From positions 62,001-126,000 of the IMG/VR virus record IMGVR_UViG_3300045970_000794: a stretch of DNA of 64,000 bases. One strand, written 5' to 3'. The position numbers and the translations under genes are program-made. Below, piece after piece: positions 7,507 through 37,550 of the stretch. The stretch's first letter is position 1. Each line of letters opens with the position of its first letter. The notes under the pieces were generated by a model. That model made no database searches and had not been told where the DNA came from. It worked only from the letters and a program-made list of their open reading frames with translations.

Positions 7507-8670
7507 TTATAAATATCTGGTGAACTTATCAAATTCAGCATGTTCGATTGCTCTACCCATGTCTGGACCTGGTTTTATTCCTTTATCTAACATTTCATCA
7601 CCAGTAACTGATAATTTAAACTGAACAAACGCCTCAATCATTTTCATATCCAATGCATTTAATTCAGCAAATCTTATTAACTCATTAGGCTCGATTTTAG
7701 AGACTATCTCAGCTTTTTTGTATCTGAATACCAATTCTGGTTTAAAGTTAAGCATACGCAATAAAAAGACTATTTTAGATACCTCTATCCAACTATATGT
7801 TAAAGCGTTTAATGCCTTTTGAACTTCTTCTAGATTATTTTTAATTAATAGTCCAGCAATTAATACAATTGGGTCCTTTTCTTCAATAACACCAGCCATA
7901 TTAACATTTAATTTACCAAATATCCATTTAAGTAAATCATATTGTCTGTACATACCAAATAAATGAGTAATTGATTTTGCTGATTTAAATGATTTCAAAA
8001 ATTCATCCCTAATTCTCTCTGGTGAAATACCTTCCAAGCTAGAATCATTTCTTAATGCCATATCAGTAGCTTCATCAAGATTAGAACCAAATCTAGCTGC
8101 GAAACGAATCGCTCTCATGATTCTAAGTCTATCTTCACCAAATCTATCCATTGGCTTACCTACAGTTCTAACAACTCCATTTTCAATATCTTTACGCCCT
8201 TTAACCAAATCAACGATTTCACCAGTTTTAAGGTCATAGAATAACGCATTAATAGTTAAGTCACGTCTTTTCACATCTTTATTTATGTTTGTGAAATTAA
8301 CTCCATCTGGCCTACGCCCAGAACCAACATCACTACGAAAAGTTGCAATCTCAAATTCATCATTAGCAGTAAACACATTAACAACACCAAAAGCTTTACC
8401 AGTTTCTAATATATTAGTAACAAATGGTTGTCCTTTAAGTGTAGCAATAACTTGGTCTGGTGTAGCATCAGTAGCAAGGTCAAAATCTTTAGGTTCTTTT
8501 CCTAATAACGCATCCCTAACTGAACCACCAACTAGGTAAAGGTCAAATCCTTTACTAGCCATAGCGTTTCTAATTAAAATGATGTCATTAGGTACTTGGA
8601 TGTGTGTTTTCTTCCTTTGTCCTAATAACCTTTGTTTTATTCTATTAAATACTGATTCTATAATTTCCAT
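7507..8670 (-). CDS. cca: CCA-adding enzyme / tRNA nucleotidyltransferase
   Basis: LVGGSVRD...KDFDLAT...RRDLTINALFYD...EDRLRIMRAIRFAARF; start MEII at 8670 lies just downstream of a TAnnTTTG promoter. Confidence 0.9.
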   Translation of the reverse strand: MEIIESVFNRIKQRLLGQRKKTHIQVPNDIILIRNAMASKGFDLYLVGGSVRDALLGKEPKDFDLATDATPDQVIATLKGQPFVTNILETGKAFGVVNVFTANDEFEIATFRSDVGSGRRPDGVNFTNINKDVKRRDLTINALFYDLKTGEIVDLVKGRKDIENGVVRTVGKPMDRFGEDRLRIMRAIRFAARFGSNLDEATDMALRNDSSLEGISPERIRDEFLKSFKSAKSITHLFGMYRQYDLLKWIFGKLNVNMAGVIEEKDPIVLIAGLLIKNNLEEVQKALNALTYSWIEVSKIVFLLRMLNFKPELVFRYKKAEIVSKIEPNELIRFAELNALDMKMIEAFVQFKLSVTGDEMLDKGIKPGPDMGRAIEHAEFDKFTRYL

Positions 8671-8713
8671 GATATTTTTTTTTGCAAAGATACTAATTAT
8701 AATATAAATATCC

Positions 8714-8744
8714 AAAAAAAATGGCGAGAAAATTTCCCCGCCAT
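8714..8744 (-). terminator. intrinsic terminator ending the amber-tRNA/pth operon
   Basis: ATGGCG...CGCCAT hairpin plus T run. Confidence 0.6.
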
Positions 8745-8748
8745 CATT

Positions 8749-9336: not shown

Positions 9337-9690
9337 TTAAATTATTTTATTATTGTATAATTTTAATGCTAATGGTAAACTGCTGCATAGTTTATCGGAA
9401 CCTTCACAAGGTTCTAAGGCAATAGCAGTTATCTCGTAACCAAGGTCTGGCTCGATGAATGTAGAATATTTAATGTTGCGATTTTCGGCTTTGGAAAGTA
9501 ATTCTTTGAGGTGTTCCTCATTACGTGCCGATAAATAAACGAGATATTTGGAATCTCGGTGCCAAATTTTGGCAACTTCTGAATGGTCATGCTGAAATTG
9601 AACGGCAGCGTGTCCCGCTTGAACTGCTTGATAGCTAGGTTCTAAATCGTCTCTGACAATTACATACATTTTTCTGTTAATCTACGTCAT
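9337..9690 (-). CDS. Pth2-like peptidyl-tRNA hydrolase with in-frame TAG at codon 3
   Basis: MT*INRKMYVIVRDDL...QAVQAGHAA...F.EPDLG..ITAIA (PTH2 motifs); upstream ATG ACG TAG ATT is in frame. Confidence 0.8.
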
Positions 9691-9732
9691 AATTTTAATT
9701 TTTAAGTTAAACAATTTTATTTATAATTTTTG

Positions 9733-9807
9733 AGACTCTAGTTGGATTCGAACCCACGCTGACGGGTTTAGAAGCCGCCGCTTTAGACCAAGCTAAGCTA
9801 TAGAGCC
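9733..9807 (-). tRNA. amber suppressor tRNA (CTA anticodon)
   Basis: GGCTCTA/TAGAGTC, D stem GCTT/AAGC, GCGGC-TTCTAAA-CCCGT, U73. Confidence 0.75.
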
Positions 9808-10141: not shown

Positions 10142-10667
10142 CTACCTGTTTAAAATTTTACCAAAGCGAATTACTTTTTCTATGAATTCTTCCTCTGTAC
10201 CATTATTATCAATGATTACATCAGCACAAGATATGCCAATATTAAATGAATCAGCTGACTCTTGTTCTAATCTTTTAGATGCATCAACCCAAACAATTAA
10301 ATCAAATAACCCTTGTTTCATACATTCTTCAATTTCACCCCTATCTCTCATACCAACATAACAGTCGGCTAATTCAAGAATTCCTTTAGCTAATCTAGCT
10401 CGGTCATCTTTATTATAATCACAAATCACAAATCATATTATACCATTCAGCTCTATGATTTGACCTATCTTCGTAACATTCCTCAGATGTCTTATAATCA
10501 TACTTTTCACTTAATTCATCATAAATGAATATATCAGCAGCTGCTTGTGATGATGAGATAAACTTTAAACCAAAATTATCTCTTAAAATTTCAGCAAACG
10601 TATCTTTACCATGTCTGGCATTTCCAAGGACTAACAGCCTTGGGAACTTACTTTTTCTTGTCTTCAT
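10142..10667 (-). pseudogene. P-loop nucleotide (dNMP-type) kinase split by a 7-bp tandem duplication
   Basis: GNARHGKDT P-loop; ATTTGTG repeated near 10420-10434 separates the 82-aa and 95-aa ORFs, both containing ICD. Confidence 0.75.
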
Positions 10668-11424
10668 AAAAATCTATTTTAAATGTTTTTTTAATTAATT
10701 TATTGTTTTTAATTGCAAATACTATTGAACTTTGAGATACTCCTATGACTCTAGCAGCTTCAGCTCCAGATTCTAAAATAGTAATTTCATTTGTTATAAT
10801 GTTTTTAATCGTAACTTTTTTACTACGTAAACTAATTTGACCAATTTTAAAAGAGTTAGAATTAGATTTAAAATTTTTAGTAAAACGAGCCTCAACTAAC
10901 TCTTTAATATCGGAATTTTTTATTTCATCATGATAAAACCAAGCAATATTTTTAACTGTTTTACAATTACCAAGGCAACATTTTGGAATTACACTTCGAT
11001 GTGTTTTTAATTCTCTAGATGCATCTTCAGCACTATTAAATTCATAAACAATAACACCTTCTTTATTATAACCAATCACACTTTTAGCATTATTACCTTT
11101 CTTGAAACTAGTGTTGTTACCAAATGTACAACCATCACCACCTAATGTATTATTAACTAAATCAAATCCCCATAATTTCATTTGACTAATCCAATATTTT
11201 TCCCAAAAAACCCATTCATCTATCGGTACTACATCAATCACCCATAAAATTGGTTTTAACTCTTCATTTCTTAATGAATTAATCCAATTTCGTTTATGTG
11301 TTTGATGGTCTCTAGCTCTATTCAAATGAGCTTTATATCTTTGTGTTATATTATTCGCTTTACCAACATATCTTACATGACCAGTCCTAGGGTCAATAAG
11401 AACATAAATATTTGTCGTTTCCAT
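10648..11424 (-). CDS. GIY-YIG homing endonuclease with NUMOD1-like repeats
   Basis: NIYVLIDP...YVGKA...E.YWI...L.N; C-terminal AEAARVIGV repeats. Confidence 0.85.
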   Translation of the reverse strand: METTNIYVLIDPRTGHVRYVGKANNITQRYKAHLNRARDHQTHKRNWINSLRNEELKPILWVIDVVPIDEWVFWEKYWISQMKLWGFDLVNNTLGGDGCTFGNNTSFKKGNNAKSVIGYNKEGVIVYEFNSAEDASRELKTHRSVIPKCCLGNCKTVKNIAWFYHDEIKNSDIKELVEARFTKNFKSNSNSFKIGQISLRSKKVTIKNIITNEITILESGAEAARVIGVSQSSIVFAIKNNKLIKKTFKIDFYEDKKK

Positions 11425-11458
11425 ATTAATACATTTCTATATAAATATGGTGAAATCT

Positions 11459-12525: not shown

Positions 12526-13201
12526 TTATTTTAATAATTCTATCTTACCTTTTAAGATTTCTTTTAGACTCACTCTTTTACCAGTTATATGGTCAATAAC
12601 AGTATCATCTTTAACTCTATATGTTCTTCGTTTATCACCACGACACCCATTACCGATTTGTTCTCTTCTCTCATCAATTTCTTCTTCAATAACACCAGTT
12701 TGATAGAATTTATTAACCCGCTTAGTTAATTCACTTAATGCTTCTTCCCTATTTTTATGCTGGTCACGACCATCACGCACTACTTTAATACCAGTAGCAT
12801 AATGAGTCATTACAACGCATGAATCAGTAGTGTTGCGGTGCTGACCACCTTTACCACTACCTCTAATAGTTTCAATACGAATCTCAGATGGGTGTATTTC
12901 AACCATCTTATATTCATTTTTTTCTAAAATTGCTACAGTTATTGAACTTGTGTGAACTCTACCACGTTTTTCTGTTGGTGAAACTCTTTGCCATAAATGG
13001 GTGCCCGATTCTGAATTGAAAAAATCGGAGGCTTCTGGTGAGCTAAAGGCAGAAAACTATATTACTAGGTGTCTCACTTAATAATTCATATCTAAAATCG
13101 TTACGATTACACGCTTTCACGTATATTTTATATAACTCCCTAACTAATAATTTTGAATCTTCACCACCCTCGGCAGCTCTAATTTCAACTGTTGTTTTCA
13201 T
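12526..13201 (-). CDS. class I peptide chain release factor (about 224 aa) requiring a +1 frameshift at CTT-TAG-C
   Basis: Frame 0: [19 protein letters not shown]...VFCL*; +1 frame: [34 protein letters not shown]...GSGKGGQH, joining ORF 12526-12906. Confidence 0.85.
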
Positions 13202-13937
13202 AATATTTATTTTTATTTAAATTTCCAATATATTCTATACCGTTTATTATTCTTGTTGTAGCCCATAACGGACGTAAATTATTCAACGCATTTACAACAC
13301 TAGGCGGTGAATCAATTGGGAATGACGATATTGGTTTAATATGGTCAACATGCCATTCACCATGATTATCCCACGACATCCCTTCAGTAAATAGTGATTC
13401 AATATGATGTTTAAATTGGGTTGCAGAATACCCTAACAAGTCAATAGTATGACCTTCTTTAGACTTACCTAATCGTTTAAGTGTGAAGTATAATAAATCA
13501 CCCCAAATTTTACGATATGGGTGATTTTTCCTGTATTTTTGTCTATTTTCATCAATCTTACTTTTATTTAATTTTCGGTATTCTTTATCATAAGCTCGTT
13601 TCTTATCTCGATTTTCTTTAGCGTAAAGTCTATCTTTCTCTCTAACATCATCAACATTATCTAACCGATATTGTTTTTGATAATCATTTCGCTTATCCTT
13701 ATTAACTTCCCGATATTCTTTAAAATAAATATCTAACTTATCTTTATTCTTATCTCTATACTCACTGTCTTGTTTACGTTTAGAATCTAAATATGTTTCA
13801 GAATAAACAACAACATCGAAAATTTCTTCTCTCAATTTTTTTATTGTTAACCCATGTTTTTTCAAATGACTACTACTTAAATATAATAATTCGTTATCAC
13901 AAATAGGACAGACAATATAATCAACATTTTTTACCAT
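13185..13937 (-). CDS. HNH endonuclease
   Basis: FKHHIESLFTEGMSWDNHGEWHVDHIKP...NALNNLRPLW. Confidence 0.85.
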   Translation of the reverse strand: MVKNVDYIVCPICDNELLYLSSSHLKKHGLTIKKLREEIFDVVVYSETYLDSKRKQDSEYRDKNKDKLDIYFKEYREVNKDKRNDYQKQYRLDNVDDVREKDRLYAKENRDKKRAYDKEYRKLNKSKIDENRQKYRKNHPYRKIWGDLLYFTLKRLGKSKEGHTIDLLGYSATQFKHHIESLFTEGMSWDNHGEWHVDHIKPISSFPIDSPPSVVNALNNLRPLWATTRIINGIEYIGNLNKNKYYENNS

Positions 13938-14502: not shown

Positions 14503-14515
14503 AATTTTTTTTTTG

Positions 14516-14587
14516 TAGCGGGAGTAGGACTCGAACCTACGACCTACGGGTTATGAGCCCGCCGAGCTACCACTGCTCCACCCCGCA
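14516..14587 (-). tRNA. tRNA-fMet(CAT)
   Basis: 1:72 mismatch, GCGGG-CTCATAA-CCCGT. Confidence 0.9.
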
Positions 14588-14621
14588 ATATATTTTTAGT
14601 TTAGCTATTTTCAAAAAAAGT

Positions 14622-14694
14622 GTTAAGACGGCTGGATTTGAACACAGCAACTCGGGATTTAGTCCACGCAAGATACTATTTCTATACATCTTAA
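14622..14694 (-). pseudogene. degenerate tRNA-like sequence
   Basis: TTAAGAT/GTCTTAA acceptor and GTTCAAATC T loop; aberrant anticodon loop GGA-CTAAA-TCC. Confidence 0.5.
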
Positions 14695-14726
14695 CACATA
14701 TATAAATATGCGCTAAATTGAAAAAG

Positions 14727-14798
14727 TACTCGATAGGAGAATCGAACTCCTATTTAAAGCTTGAAAAGCTTCCGTCCTAACCGTTAGACGAATCGAGC
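14727..14798 (-). tRNA. tRNA-Glu(TTC)
   Basis: Standard cloverleaf, loop TTTTCAA. Confidence 0.9.
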
Positions 14799-14806
14799 AT
14801 ATGACA

Positions 14807-14866
14807 CAGGAAAACTTTGTTTTCAAATTTTCAGATTTTGATTTTTAAGTTTGCTGAATGTTTCCT
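14807..14866 (-). ncRNA. stem-GCAA family small RNA
   Basis: AGGAAAC-ATTCAGCAA...GTTTTCCTG. Confidence 0.6.
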
Positions 14867-14882
14867 TTAGTCACTTTGTAAA

Positions 14883-14950
14883 CAGGCTAGTTACTTTAAC
14901 ACTACTGAATTTTAAATTTAGTTTGTTTTTAGTTTTGCTGAACCTAACCT
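14883..14950 (-). ncRNA. stem-GCAA family small RNA
   Basis: AGGTTAG-GTTCAGCAA...AACTAGCCTG. Confidence 0.6.
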
Positions 14951-14958
14951 TAATCCCG

Positions 14959-15051
14959 TGGCCCCCGCTGGATTTGAACCAGCACCTATCTTGCGATATG
15001 CTCTCGAATCATTTCTATAAATAGAAGTTATTCTCCTTGAGCTAGGTGACC
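14959..15051 (-). ncRNA. anticodon-less tRNA-like RNA with expanded D loop
   Basis: GGTCACC/GGGGGCC, GCTC/GAGC, TATC-GCAA-GATA, GCTGG-TTCAAAT-CCAGC. Confidence 0.7.
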
Positions 15052-16433: not shown

Positions 16434-17036
16434 TTATTTATTTAATTTACTCGTTATTTTTCGTAGTAATCTATCAGTTGAAGTGATTTGAGGAAGAACA
16501 TCAATCATATCACCACCATTAAATATGATGATATCAGATTTAGCCATTTTTTCATCATCACTCATCTGATTTGAGATTCTATCCATTATTTCAACCTCAC
16601 TTAATGTACCTCTAGTCACTGCCCGCTTAATTCTAAGTTCAAGTGGGCAATATACTGTAATAATAAAATCAAAATTAGACTCACCATTAGTTTCAAATAA
16701 TATTGCAGATTCACATAAAATATATGGTGATGTTTGTTCATTAACCCATTCTTCAAATTTTTGACGAAGAACTGGTAATATTATTAAATGTAATTCACTT
16801 AACTTTGATTTATCATTAAACATGATACTACTTATTTTTTTTACATTTATTTTATCAAATTCATCATAAATATCTTCACCAAAAAGTGCCTTAACTTTTA
16901 ATTTCACATCTAACACATCATAACAAGCCTTAGCCTCAATGTCTGTATTATATATTGGAATACCCAAATTATTGAATTTTCGGCAAACATATGATTTACC
17001 ACACCCAATACCGCCAGTAATTGCTACTTTTATCAT
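16434..17036 (-). CDS. coaE: dephospho-CoA kinase
   Basis: KVAITGGIGCGKS...IYNTD...ESAILFE...KSDIII.N. Confidence 0.9.
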   Translation of the reverse strand: MIKVAITGGIGCGKSYVCRKFNNLGIPIYNTDIEAKACYDVLDVKLKVKALFGEDIYDEFDKINVKKISSIMFNDKSKLSELHLIILPVLRQKFEEWVNEQTSPYILCESAILFETNGESNFDFIITVYCPLELRIKRAVTRGTLSEVEIMDRISNQMSDDEKMAKSDIIIFNGGDMIDVLPQITSTDRLLRKITSKLNK

Positions 17037-17038
17037 AA

Positions 17039-17878
17039 TTAATCAAATAAAATTTTACTAATAGGTTGAATAGCCTTTTTATGTTTAAATTTATACTTAT
17101 TATTCCCAAGTAATTGAATTATCTCAAGACCCAGATTGGAAGCTTTAACCGTATCCTCATAAACAACAAACTCAGTAGCACTATGCCAATCATAATATCC
17201 AGCAAACAAATTCATACAATTAAAATCAAAACTGCGTTTAATCGCAAATACATCGGTAAATGGGTCAGTATCTCGAATATTAGAAATACCATATCTTAAT
17301 AATATTGGGTCAACTAGTTTAAAGAACTCTCTATTAAATAGTTGCGTCCTATTTGAAACATATGATAACCAATCAGAACCTGGTGCATCAAATTCAATCG
17401 CATATCCAACACTATTGAATATATCAACATCAGCATTTCTGGAGCCAAGACAACCAATTTCTTCACCTTTAAAAAATGCACCAATAATATTATCAGTTTT
17501 ACTTATTATATCTAAACAAATTGCTATACCAGCTTTATCATCACCGCCAACACCAGTAATAGAATCTATACCTTGTTTTAATGGGTTCAGTGCCGTTAAA
17601 ATAGTTTTATTTTTATAAAATTTTTCATTGATTTTTAATTTTACATCTTTTTCAACCAGCTCACGATGCTCTTGAACGGTATCCATATGTGCAATCACAC
17701 ATGGGAAATACTCACCTTCACCAACTTTACCTTTTTTAAGATAAACATTACCATATGAATCAAGAATTACTGGTATAGAATTTTTAACTCCCCAAGAAAT
17801 TAAAAAATCAATCATCCGTTTTTCATAGTTATAAACGGTTGGAACTGCTAGTACTTCTTTCAATAATTCTATGTCCAT
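17039..17878 (-). CDS. M20/M28/M42-clan zinc peptidase-like protein
   Basis: AHMDTV...GGDDKAGI...EEIGCLGS...EFD...YYDWHSATE. Confidence 0.75.
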   Translation of the reverse strand: MDIELLKEVLAVPTVYNYEKRMIDFLISWGVKNSIPVILDSYGNVYLKKGKVGEGEYFPCVIAHMDTVQEHRELVEKDVKLKINEKFYKNKTILTALNPLKQGIDSITGVGGDDKAGIAICLDIISKTDNIIGAFFKGEEIGCLGSRNADVDIFNSVGYAIEFDAPGSDWLSYVSNRTQLFNREFFKLVDPILLRYGISNIRDTDPFTDVFAIKRSFDFNCMNLFAGYYDWHSATEFVVYEDTVKASNLGLEIIQLLGNNKYKFKHKKAIQPISKILFD

Positions 17879-34716: not shown

Positions 34717-37290
34717 TTATATTTTACCACTTTCTACAACTTCATCTATCTTTTCAATGATGAATTGAGATACTTTGGAAATAATTTCCATATTTTTCTG
34801 AATTCTTTCTTTATTAGCTTTCCATAATGCTAAATAAGTCGCATGTTGTGTCGTTGGTAATCCATAATGTTTCAATACTACATAAGATACGCTTTCAGCT
34901 TGTAATTCCTGTAATGCTGAGGTTTGATAATTACCATTATCAATATGAAAAATAGATTTTTCTTTCCAATGCATTAATTCATGACCAAGTTCATGTACCA
35001 TAGTTGATAATTTACCAATACCAGTCATATCTGATGATATATTAATCTTATCACCAGCACTATAACCCTTTTCTTTACCTTTTGACGAATCAACTGTTAC
35101 ATCCACACCCATATATCTTGCAACTTCAGTTACAGCATCAAATAATTTATCAGCGGTTTCTGATGGTGTATTATCACCCCACCATTGTGGTTCATCTGGA
35201 ATATCACCCCTTTCATCAATTGCTTTTGTATCTGACACATCAAATACTCTTGCTGGTACAAATCTAATCTGACTATCTTGATTTTGTCCTAAAACATCCA
35301 ATTGATTGTCAGTTTCATCATCCGATAATGCAGTATTAGGTTTATTAGATTTCTGTGGGCGAAGTATACTAATAGATGTCGCACCTTTTTGTACTTGTCT
35401 ATGTACTTTTTGCCATGTATTATAGCCAGCAACCTTAGTTGCATCTGGTTTTTGTATGTAAATAAGTATTCTATTGTAAAAACTATATTGATGGAATTTT
35501 GAGAAGAATGTTAAATATCTTCTAATTTCAGCTGATAATGCCACCTCATCAGTTGCATTAGCTAAATCTGAAATATATTGTTCTAATTTACCTTTTAGAA
35601 AATCTTTATTTTCAGTACCAGAAGCTTCAACAGCATCTTCAATATCTTCCAATGAATTAATGATATACTCAGCTTTATTAACCAATGATAATGTTCTTTT
35701 AGCGATTTCCAATTTATCAGCTGGAATCACCCATGCTTTACCATTCCAATTAAATCCATTTTGTTTTAAAACATTTTTATTTCTGAATGTTTCATTACTA
35801 GCATCTTTACCCTCTAAATCGGATAAAACAATCAACATATTGTTTGGTTTATCGTGTTGTAGTTTTAATGATTCATCTAATGATGGAGAAATCATTGAGT
35901 TTCTACTTTTTTTTTGTTTAACTACATTATCAACAGCACCAACACTACAACCACCTTCTTGTGCTTTAGTATTGTTATTTAATTTAGTACAATTATCAAG
36001 TTCAACAAACCCACCATTAGGGTAAGCTGTATCGGTTTGATTACTTTCTAATATTTTACCACCTGGTATCATCGGTTTTTTACCATGTACCGAACTATTT
36101 TTATCTTTAGCCCAAATCTTAGGTTGAACGAATGAACCACCAACACTACCAGTTGTTGTATTTTCATCAACTTCTTCAGATTCTTCAATCTCTAATGTTT
36201 CATCCAATTCTTTAATTTTAGCTTCTAATGCTTCTTGTATTTTTCTACTTATAACACCCATAGGTGCTACAAAAGAACCGCCAACACCACCAGCAGTTGT
36301 ATTTTCATTTTGTTGAATGTGTAATATCTCAGCTAATTTATCACTTGGGAATGTTCTACTTAATTCAGCAGCCAATTCAGAATCAATCTTAATAATATCA
36401 TCACCATTTCCAAATCCCTCAAGACCTTGGCCTTTAGTTAAATCGTTAAAATGATAATTAACATAACCATTAATCACATTACCATCAATTTCTACTGAAT
36501 CATAATCATATTCGAAATCTGGTTGACCATCTTCATCATTACCAATATAATCCATTGGTACTTCAGCGAATTCCATAAAATCTTTTGGGTCAATGCCAGA
36601 GTAATAAAATACAAAAAATTCACCACCACTATTCTTCATGATGGCAATCTCATTATTCATATATAATGTATTGTAATTAGATTCAGAAACTTGTGTAGGT
36701 GTAGTTGTTCTGGTTGTTTGATTACCAGGTTCTTGGTCTAATGAATGTGATGGGTCTGGTGTAAAATTACCAGCTTCAACTAATTTCATTTCACTTAGCT
36801 CTTGAGCTAAATGTTTGATATTTCGTTTAATATTTTTAGAGTTAACATTAATTTTACCATCTTCATTATTTATAATATCAAAATCGATTAAACGATTCAT
36901 CAATTCTTCACGTTTTAACCCTAGTTTTGTTATGATTGGACTTGTTTTACTAATTTGCTCACCATTAACTAAACCAGATAATACCTTTTTAATTTCCTCA
37001 CCAACTTCTCTTAACGTAAATCCCTCTTCACTTTCAGTAATTTTAGTTGCTGGTGTGAATGATTTAGTTGTTTTCTCATTTTCTTTTGGTGTTTGTGGTT
37101 TATAATCAGTACCCATAACTGGATGCTCACCTAAATCAGTATCTTCAGTAAAATTAATTTTTTCCTTCATACCACTATTAGCAGCACTTTGTTGGAACTG
37201 TGCTTTTAAATTATGGGTTGCTTTGCTTTCTTCAATATGTTCAACAACCTTTGATAATTGTTCTTGTGTTAATTTAACTTTTTTTCCCAT
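34717..37290 (-). CDS. polyvalent protein: low-complexity N-terminus plus ArdC-like ssDNA-binding domain and zincin (HELGH) domain
   Basis: FHQYSFYNRILIYIQKPDATKVAGYNTWQKVHRQVQKG...VFDVSDT...HELGH...ELQAESVSYVV. Confidence 0.75.
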   Translation of the reverse strand: MGKKVKLTQEQLSKVVEHIEESKATHNLKAQFQQSAANSGMKEKINFTEDTDLGEHPVMGTDYKPQTPKENEKTTKSFTPATKITESEEGFTLREVGEEIKKVLSGLVNGEQISKTSPIITKLGLKREELMNRLIDFDIINNEDGKINVNSKNIKRNIKHLAQELSEMKLVEAGNFTPDPSHSLDQEPGNQTTRTTTPTQVSESNYNTLYMNNEIAIMKNSGGEFFVFYYSGIDPKDFMEFAEVPMDYIGNDEDGQPDFEYDYDSVEIDGNVINGYVNYHFNDLTKGQGLEGFGNGDDIIKIDSELAAELSRTFPSDKLAEILHIQQNENTTAGGVGGSFVAPMGVISRKIQEALEAKIKELDETLEIEESEEVDENTTTGSVGGSFVQPKIWAKDKNSSVHGKKPMIPGGKILESNQTDTAYPNGGFVELDNCTKLNNNTKAQEGGCSVGAVDNVVKQKKSRNSMISPSLDESLKLQHDKPNNMLIVLSDLEGKDASNETFRNKNVLKQNGFNWNGKAWVIPADKLEIAKRTLSLVNKAEYIINSLEDIEDAVEASGTENKDFLKGKLEQYISDLANATDEVALSAEIRRYLTFFSKFHQYSFYNRILIYIQKPDATKVAGYNTWQKVHRQVQKGATSISILRPQKSNKPNTALSDDETDNQLDVLGQNQDSQIRFVPARVFDVSDTKAIDERGDIPDEPQWWGDNTPSETADKLFDAVTEVARYMGVDVTVDSSKGKEKGYSAGDKINISSDMTGIGKLSTMVHELGHELMHWKEKSIFHIDNGNYQTSALQELQAESVSYVVLKHYGLPTTQHATYLALWKANKERIQKNMEIISKVSQFIIEKIDEVVESGKI

Positions 37291-37292
37291 AA

Positions 37293-37550
37293 TTATGCTG
37301 ATTTATTTGACAATGATGACTTCCAGAAATTACGTTTAGTCCATAAAGTCTTATATAATTGAGTTATTACATTACCAGCAATATCAACAATTTTATCTTC
37401 CAATTCTTTATTGGATTTAAGATGTTGTTTAACGATGGCCGTAACTTTATCCTTCAAATCGTTAGAATTAAGAACGGTTTTAACCTCTTGTTTAACATCG
37501 TCTCTGGTTAACTCTTCGTGTAATCTTGTTTTAATGAAATTATTCTCCAT
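37293..37550 (-). CDS. hypothetical protein
   Basis: Start MENNF after TATTTATA motif. Confidence 0.6.
   Translation of the reverse strand: MENNFIKTRLHEELTRDDVKQEVKTVLNSNDLKDKVTAIVKQHLKSNKELEDKIVDIAGNVITQLYKTLWTKRNFWKSSLSNKSA

Follow-up and report, generated by a model that had tools for sequence, protein, structure and literature searches.

A putative UAG-dependent +1 frameshift in an RF1-type release factor gene of viral origin, and its extensively recoded family

Introduction

The autoregulatory +1 frameshift through which bacteria express release factor 2 (RF2, the product of prfB) is a textbook case of recoding, and here we describe a viral gene for an RF1-type release factor (RF) that appears to be organized in the same way. 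The gene lies in a 64,000-nucleotide (nt) stretch of DNA, referred to below as the window, which is part of the 362-kb viral contig IMGVR_UViG_3300045970_000794; the window has a G+C content (GC) of 30%, and most of its genes are on the minus strand. Engineered prfB sites with UAG as the stop reportedly shift, and suppressor tRNAs reportedly compete with the shift (Weiss et al., 1987; Curran and Yarus, 1988).

No natural site of this kind has been described in the sources consulted. In surveys covering over 12,000 bacterial genomes, TAG was absent from all 8,164 prfB motifs, and prfA, the gene for RF1, yielded no credible case of frameshifting (Prince et al., PMC12421855); a UAG/RF1 counterpart of the prfB frameshift is stated by Atkins et al. 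as not known (PMC5009743); and all of the CUU-stop +1 sites in RECODE are prfB sites (PMC10885494). Papers on huge and recoded phages mention RF genes and never a frameshift within them, and full-text literature searches returned no description of a frameshift in a phage RF gene or in prfA. The window gene would be the first natural RF1/UAG counterpart of the self-regulating RF2 frameshift. In our preferred reading, to which we give a probability of roughly 75%, a programmed +1 frameshift makes the factor with a yield inverse to UAG decoding, providing a low and termination-sensitive supply that is most likely under negative feedback.

Results

A release factor gene in two frames

The gene is divided between two open reading frames (ORFs), ORF1 in frame 0 and ORF2 in the +1 frame (Table 1). 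ORF1 starts three codons 5′ of an EIRxxEGG motif, and its 3′ end reads TGC CTT (13048-13046) TAG (13045-13043) C (13042); ORF2 codes for the remainder of RF domain 2 with the decoding loop, for domain 3 with the catalytic GGQ motif, and for domain 4. As in prfB-type sites, CUU is the codon immediately 5′ of the frame-0 stop, and beyond this point the +1 frame remains open. This is the arrangement that a first-pass annotation, made from the sequence alone, had described as giving an uninterrupted class-I RF upon a +1 shift after CTT, and it is confirmed by the coordinates and by the matches to an RF1 model given below.

Two features narrow down how the gene could be expressed. Because a TAG closes the +1 frame shortly upstream of the site, a shift is possible within 11 nt only, and these include CTT T. 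Translation must also begin in frame 0, since no other frame encodes the tip of helix α5, and the +1 frame has no ATG until past the decoding loop. The joined product is predicted to be an RF1-type class-I release factor of about 224 residues without domain 1.

Homology to RF1

The N-terminal (N) and C-terminal (C) pieces were searched separately and never as a joined sequence. The N piece matches the Pfam domain PCRF and positions 106-150 of the RF1 model NF001859 (30.3 bits), and the C piece matches PCRF together with the RF-1 domain (RF-1 at 6e-24) and positions 172-333 of NF001859 (158.9 bits); the two pieces occupy consecutive stretches of a single RF1 model, and the junction aligns residue-for-residue with relatives. 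When the C piece is scored with the NCBIfam hidden Markov models (HMMs), RF1 is preferred over RF2 (158.9 versus 100.6 bits), and against chains of the Protein Data Bank (PDB) it gives 121 bits with E. coli RF1 (residues 177-340) and about 72 bits with RF2. A structure prediction for the C piece (mean predicted local distance difference test score of 64, predicted template modeling score of 0.42) was too poor for a fold search and was not used.

The N piece aligns to residues 108-151 of Thermus RF1, the helix-α5 region. It begins at about RF1 residue 105, the start of RF domain 2, and the protein thus lacks domain 1, as the first-pass annotation had noted; the absence is family-wide, with every member starting 1-8 codons before the N-terminal EIRxxEGG motif (the N motif). 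The tip of helix α5, which in RF1-ribosome structures recognizes U at the first stop-codon position, is recognizable in the N piece (Table 1). The decoding-loop region of the C piece aligns to E. coli RF1 QRVPATESQGRIHTS (QRV-PAT-ESQGRIHTS), and here the SPT tripeptide of the window protein is placed opposite PAT, with the Thr retained and Ser as the first residue. According to what Ito et al. (2000) reportedly found, the first residue of this tripeptide reads base 2 of the stop codon and the third residue reads base 3. From the RF1-type Q, T and HTS decoding residues, the product is expected to read UAG.

Conservation of the shift site

A protein search returned more than 1,200 relatives in two length classes, one of about 225 amino acids (aa) and one of 126-186 aa, the latter consisting of fragments that begin in the +1 frame. 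The DNA of relatives was drawn from viral, genome and metagenome collections, and the frame class of each gene was scored from the relation of the EIRxxEGG motif to the WQRxPxTE motif. The resulting pool of 149 loci represents 126 distinct genes, mostly on huge-phage contigs, of which 63 need a +1 shift, 58 are in a single frame with one or more in-frame stops, four are uninterrupted and one is ambiguous. Nearly the whole family would be expressed through a premature stop.

In all 63 shifted genes the codon immediately 5′ of the frame-0 stop is CTT, which is far beyond chance, and in 55 of them the stop is followed by C. The shift cassette is found at three alignment columns (33, 43 and 49, counted in codons after the N motif), and the N-to-C spacing is constant at about 66 codons, which identifies these as independent shift sites. 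The position used in the window, column 49, is represented by 21 distinct genes, with CTT TAG C in 20 and CTT TGA C in one; the codon before CTT varies among them (TGT, TGC or TAT), and so do the codons after the site. The conservation of CTT-TAG at one codon with freely varying flanks, which had been proposed as a check at first pass, supports a prfB-style slip on a phage class-I RF gene. The Ser codon past the shift is AGC in 20 of 20 site-49 TAG genes and never the synonymous AGT. Elsewhere the stop differs: site 33 has TGA in 26 genes, TAG in 11 and TAA in two, and site 43 has TGA in three and neither TAG nor TAA, while TAA is also missing at site 49. TAA, the stop that is read by both host release factors, is thereby scarce at shift sites as a whole (2/63).

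An 83%-identical relative of the window protein (P0109) is represented by contigs in at least five samples. Those with readable DNA (ERZ27313531, ERR4221447 and ERZ18658410, from three samples) all read TGC CTT TAG CGG, and for contigs that retain the upstream flank the gene callers also give a 53-aa upstream ORF. A tree built from the C pieces implies at least 11 changes of recoding type and at least seven of stop identity.

Serine at the first position of the decoding tripeptide is not a family trait, as most relatives have PPT, and the S/P variation is sporadic and unlinked to the stop. The hybrid of RF1 and RF2 loops that had been suggested for SPT from the window alone is thus not characteristic of the family, and the HMM scores are clearly of RF1 type. 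Covariation of the SPT/PPT loop with the sensor stop was looked for and none was seen among the relatives. Many relatives of the site-33 clade (L126-L158 and others) have GRVQTS for GRVHTS, placing Gln instead of His beside the decoding Thr, and this exchange is likewise unlinked to the stop.

Contigs carrying the family are up to 482 kb long, with a GC of 21 to 65%. One of them, IMGVR_UViG_3300042502_001233 (362 kb; L018/L098 and L037), carries two RF-like genes, separated by about 3.4 kb. The family is rare in cellular genomes, and the exceptions include the 306-kb plasmid pTMH.W2_2 of Cupriavidus sp. TMH.W2 (L166), with an in-frame TGA member, and a scaffold of Thiobacillus denitrificans DSM 12475 (L167), which has CTT TGA C after GGGG at column 43; these cultured Betaproteobacteria could serve as experimental systems. 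A gene on a Gammaproteobacteria scaffold from a metagenome-assembled genome (MAG; L165) has an in-frame TGA and N and C parts offset by 2 without a CTT-stop, which could reflect a misassembly or some other kind of recoding.

In-frame stops in the single-frame relatives

Homologs in a single frame could have spoken against a programmed shift, a point raised in the first-pass annotation, and the database homologs that seem to be of this kind turn out to carry in-frame TGA or TAG. Database proteins of about 225 aa that show W at the stop columns are code-4 translations of such interrupted genes. The 58 genes in question (e.g. L084-L112, L124/L125, L132-L159, L164 and L166) are interrupted in frame once or twice, by TGA and in rare cases by TAG, at columns 33/34, 39, 43 and 47 after EIRxxEGG, with column 47 lying one codon before the Leu of site 49. 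Four genes (L093, L111, L267 and L268) combine an in-frame TGA at column 34 with CTT TAG C at column 49, and their expression would need both events.

TGA as an ordinary Trp codon was considered and rejected for these genes. The Trp of the WQR motif is TGG in 55 of 55 distinct genes, and in these TGG is never found at the stop positions nor TGA at WQR; where column 47 holds a sense codon, it encodes K, R, Q or L; neighboring genes within 10 kb on either side, a range that would not reveal recoding restricted to late genes and served by a UGA suppressor elsewhere in the genome, have about 1% TGG codons and use TGA as a genuine stop; and members of the family are also found in Cupriavidus and Thiobacillus, where the standard code applies. 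Genetic codes were also compared by a crude measure of ORF coverage, which did not separate them. The in-frame stops look like programmed read-through or suppressor-dependent expression.

Stimulatory elements and host type

A Shine-Dalgarno (SD)-like motif upstream of CTT at site 49 is found in none of 10 distinct sequences of the low-GC clade. A GGAGG-like motif located 3-6 nt upstream is present in 24 of 28 site-33 genes and in all three site-43 genes, which belong to higher-GC phages. A search for conserved RNA structure around the shift site gave no predicted pairs across 18 sequences (window fold z = -1.6).

SD motifs precede only 2 of 58 window genes, which is under background. The upstream regions of the window genes are A-rich and several contain TAnnTTTG, a motif that is about equally frequent on the two strands of the window (57 versus 49), so that the promoter argument is weak; one relative is located in a 'Bacteroidetes' MAG scaffold. 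The SD-less genes fit a host of Bacteroidota type, and both this and the missing SD stimulator agree with what had been noted at first pass. In Flavobacterium johnsoniae prfB the shift is about 7% without SD help, and sites that are naturally SD-less are equally effective; SD-less prfB sites occur in the Flavobacteriales and still shift (PMC10798248), which marks the internal SD as a frequent companion of such sites and not a requirement. This SD-independent shifting makes a bare CUU UAG C mechanistically credible.

Genomic neighborhood

The RF gene sits within a translation island (Table 1). In most low-GC relatives, shifted and unshifted alike, an amber suppressor tRNA is encoded a few kb or less from the RF gene, and as a rule 1-4 kb downstream of it (L084-L113, L248-L308). 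The P0109 locus has the same order, with the RF gene followed by two ORFs, PTH2, one ORF and the CCA-adding enzyme, and with a gene for ribosomal protein bS21 upstream. Other than the RF gene, no TAG- or TGA-split genes are found on the coding strand of the window, which holds replication-type genes, the late genes lying outside.

Genes of homing-endonuclease type are scattered through the tRNA/translation island. Four tRNA calls in it are oversized (80-94 nt), including two tRNA-Trp(CCA) with oddly placed anticodons and one 'tRNA-Tyr(ATA)'; they may hold introns, as reported for jumbo phages (PMC13037316), or be mis-folded calls. Farther away, the window encodes an 861-aa protein that combines an anti-restriction domain with a peptidase-like one.

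Table 1. Positions of the RF gene, its sequence elements and other features in the window.
Feature	Coordinates	Strand	Remarks
tRNAs	3271-6648
Oversized tRNA call	3811-3897	-
ORF with weak NUMOD3 match	5053-5808	-
Oversized tRNA call	6354-6444	-
Oversized tRNA call	6450-6529	-
CCA-adding enzyme	7507-8748	-
PTH2-type peptidyl-tRNA hydrolase	9337-9681	-
Amber suppressor tRNA (CUA)	9732-9807	-	Ordinary 7-nt loop; 2.7 kb downstream of RF gene
GIY-YIG/NUMOD1 endonuclease	10648-11436	-
Two ORFs			Between RF gene and GIY-YIG endonuclease gene
ORF2, +1 frame	12526-13044	-	172 codons + TAA (12528-12526); opens with AGC at 13044-13042
GGQ catalytic motif	12841-12849	-	Intact; in the sole GGQ-containing ORF of the window
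Second frame-0 TAG	12959-12961	-	27 codons past the shift-site TAG; those 27 codons are without RF homology
SPT tripeptide	12973-12981	-	At the position of RF1 PxT / RF2 SPF; flanked by RF1-type Q (WQRV) and HTS
Shift heptamer CTT TAG C	13042-13048	-	C directly after the stop
ORF1, frame 0	13046-13201	-	52 codons; ATG at 13201; start of RF domain 2 including the helix-α5 tip
TAG closing +1 frame upstream	13057-13059	-	4 codons before the shift site
AEGGEDS, helix-α5 tip	13154-13174	-	Aligned to Thermus RF1 GTGGEEA; frame 0 only
ORF with HNH-like H..N..H pattern	13185-13937	-	Overlaps the RF start by 17 nt
tRNAs	14515-15051
Oversized tRNA call	14958-15051	-
CoaE, dephospho-CoA kinase	16434-17042	-
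861-aa protein	34717-37302	-	ArdC N-terminal (anti-restriction) + IrrE/M78 peptidase-like domains

Discussion

Proposed mechanism

We propose that a ribosome carrying peptidyl-tRNA-Leu on CUU, with UAG in its A site, would slip by +1 onto UUU and then read AGC, giving the predicted junction ..VFCL-SSPEA... The P-site slip would be the same as in bacterial prfB, taking place here without an SD or RNA-structure stimulator, and both its occurrence and its efficiency are predicted from the layout of the site. Its competitors would be all decoders of UAG, namely host RF1, the amber suppressor tRNA of the phage and, provided that it recognizes UAG, the phage factor; the yield would drop as the capacity for decoding UAG grows, and it would climb when termination at UAG is slow. 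The outcome would be a low, termination-sensitive supply of additional RF1-type factor. The first-pass annotation had expected a suppressor tRNA to raise expression, and the opposite is predicted, as the suppressor would fill the A site at UAG and lower the shift, and ribosomes would continue in frame 0 to the second TAG, yielding a dead-end product. Feedback of the factor on its own synthesis is the simplest reading for the window gene, and a plausible one, yet it is unproven.

Several points weigh against this proposal. The trans-frame product is predicted from sequence, and the stop specificity of an SPT/PPT loop in a protein without domain 1 is presumed. Relatives with the same loop (WQRVPPTE..GRVHTS) use UGA more often than UAG at site 33 (26 versus 11), use the two about equally overall (30 versus 31), and also use UAA, and the changes of stop identity on the tree, at least seven in number, occurred without change in the decoding loop. 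Such interchange of stops with a constant loop means that a rule by which each factor senses its own codon cannot apply to every member, unless their specificity is broader than that of RF1. The suggestion that the sensor is the factor's own codon is compatible with an RF1-type protein on UAG, and is less easily extended to same-loop relatives with UGA or UAA; in these, either the cassettes would sense host RF2 or the factors would have a wider reading range than RF1. Finally, ribosomes at the shift-site UAG would be drawn off by the amber suppressor tRNA that the phage itself encodes.

Alternative explanations

The alternative that survives best, which we nevertheless consider unlikely, is a real frameshift without autoregulation. 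The stop would be whichever codon terminates most slowly in the host (UAG-C in SD-blind, TAA-rich systems and UGA-C elsewhere), the cassette would set a low fixed ratio or report the RF1/RF2 capacity of the host, and the factor would act as a back-up under termination stress or after the phage has disabled the host factor. The swapping of TGA, TAG and TAA as sensor stops with no change in the decoding loop fits this explanation, as does the frequent placement of RF1-type members on the RF2-specific UGA at site 33; sister genes have an in-frame UGA or UAG in place of the shift, and TAG is the rarest stop of the window (5/63 long ORFs). Less easily accommodated are the preference of the window's site for TAG over TGA (20 to 1), despite UGA-C being weak in termination as well, and the retention of the RF1-type Q, T and HTS residues, for which reading of UAG is expected. 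We retain the UAG-responsive, most likely autoregulatory frameshift as the preferred reading for the window gene.

A pseudogene, or a sequencing or assembly indel in the contig, would produce a similar split, and the window contig is known from one assembly only. The identical one-base offset, however, is seen at the same heptamer in 21 distinct genes and in all three readable P0109 contigs from three different samples; both halves are conserved at the protein level down to 45% identity, and the low-GC clade includes no relative with an uninterrupted single frame. Conservation of the heptamer and its recovery in independent contigs exclude sequencing error and pseudogene for the family, and make either very unlikely for the window contig itself.

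It is about equally improbable that the neighboring CUA tRNA decodes the site, either by reading UAGC as a four-base codon or by reading UAG in frame as sense, with no P-site slip on CUU. An amber suppressor tRNA is a conserved neighbor of the RF gene in the low-GC clade, and quadruplet reading of UAGC would yield a product of equal length. Against this, 35 of 35 distinct CUA tRNAs have ordinary 7-nt CU-CUA-AA loops, a quadruplet reading needs no invariant CTT, reading the TAG in frame leads to the second TAG through codons without RF homology, and the CTT rule extends to TGA- and TAA-shifted relatives and to loci with no suppressor nearby.

Least probable of all are two separate small functional proteins made without a shift (an N piece of 52 aa and, initiated at the ATG at 12906, a C piece of 126 aa), which are just the two products that gene callers annotate (P0004), since the 126-aa product would be without the decoding loop, the region from TAG to ATG is protein-conserved in the +1 frame across all relatives, and the pieces jointly rebuild one RF domain 2. 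Transcriptional slippage was also rejected, the T-run at the site being just 3 nt.

Implications for the family

The relatives suggest that the cassette emerged repeatedly, alternating with in-frame stops. For the family as a whole we lean, by a modest degree, toward a broader interpretation in which these domain-1-less RF1-type genes, 122 of the 126 distinct ones being built for bypass of a premature stop (by a CUU-stop +1 slip at one of three codons, including what would be the first natural RF1/UAG version, or through one or two leaky in-frame stops), constitute a viral device that senses termination capacity and supplies a reserve release factor. If this interpretation holds, the free interchange of UGA, UAG and UAA with a constant loop raises the possibility that the factors read beyond the RF1 codons.

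The family offers a natural test-bed for the sensing of termination rate and a handle on why huge phages carry suppressor tRNAs together with release factors. Synthetic biology with recoded strains could also draw on it for compact, SD-independent frameshift switches responsive to RF1 or RF2. For annotation, it means that genes of this family are presently called as fragments or translated under the wrong genetic code.

Comparison with known systems

Phage code-change modules resemble the locus in having an RF gene in a tRNA island by a suppressor tRNA, in a huge phage with a probable Bacteroidota host (10.1101/2021.08.26.457843; PMC6784885). In the published pairing, RF2 accompanies TAG recoding and RF1 accompanies TGA recoding (10.1101/2021.08.26.457843; PMC6784885; PMC13037316), whereas the window pairs an RF1-type factor with an amber suppressor, the reverse arrangement. 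In such a module the RF type would be expected to spare the recoded stop, and phage genes to carry that stop in frame; here the RF1-type factor stands beside an amber suppressor, and the coding strand of the window is without other TAG- or TGA-split genes, although recoding elsewhere in the 362-kb genome, where the late genes lie, may still occur. A giant-virus eRF1-like RF gene that needs both readthrough and frameshifting, in the account of it given in PMC5009743 (ref. 349), is likewise a viral termination factor with recoding signals; compared by that description, it is of eukaryotic/archaeal type and from an amoeba virus, and the protein and signals are unrelated.

Among short class-I RF homologs, PrfH (TIGR03072) shares the lack of domain 1. 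The window protein differs in keeping the RF1-type stop-reading elements and scores 77.1 bits against a PrfH cutoff of 166.65; PrfH pairs with RtcB, for which there was no Pfam match among the flanking ORFs scanned. Membership in the ArfB/ICT1-type rescue factors, in which a GGQ domain with a basic C-terminal tail stands without any codon-reading domain, was also rejected (32.5 bits against a cutoff of 100, over residues 46-88 only), and the PCRF domain is present. Bacterial RF1 (prfA; NF001859 / TIGR00019) provides the best HMM and PDB match, with the PCRF and RF-1 domains, the GGQ motif, the α5 tip and the Q..T..HTS residues in common. The phage family differs from it in lacking domain 1 (about 105 residues), in having an SPT/PPT loop for P(A/V)T and in the interruption of the gene, and the window pieces (30.3 + 158.9, or about 189 bits) fall far below the RF1 equivalog cutoff of 400 bits.

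The closest parallel in the manner of expression is bacterial prfB, where the A-site stop is likewise preceded by a P-site CUU and followed by C. Also shared are a short frame-0 ORF, a class-I RF as product, and avoidance of TAA at the shift site (for prfB, PMC12421855); the higher-GC relatives also share the SD-like GGAGG 3-6 nt upstream. The window gene differs in being viral and of RF1 type, in having UAG as the stop and in the lack of an SD at the site. It differs also in the location of the site, which is in domain 2 (codon 52/53) instead of domain 1 (codon ~26 in prfB), and which therefore arose independently of the prfB site. The prfB mechanism thus appears to have arisen independently on a viral RF1-type gene, with UAG and without an SD, in a family that is almost universally recoded.

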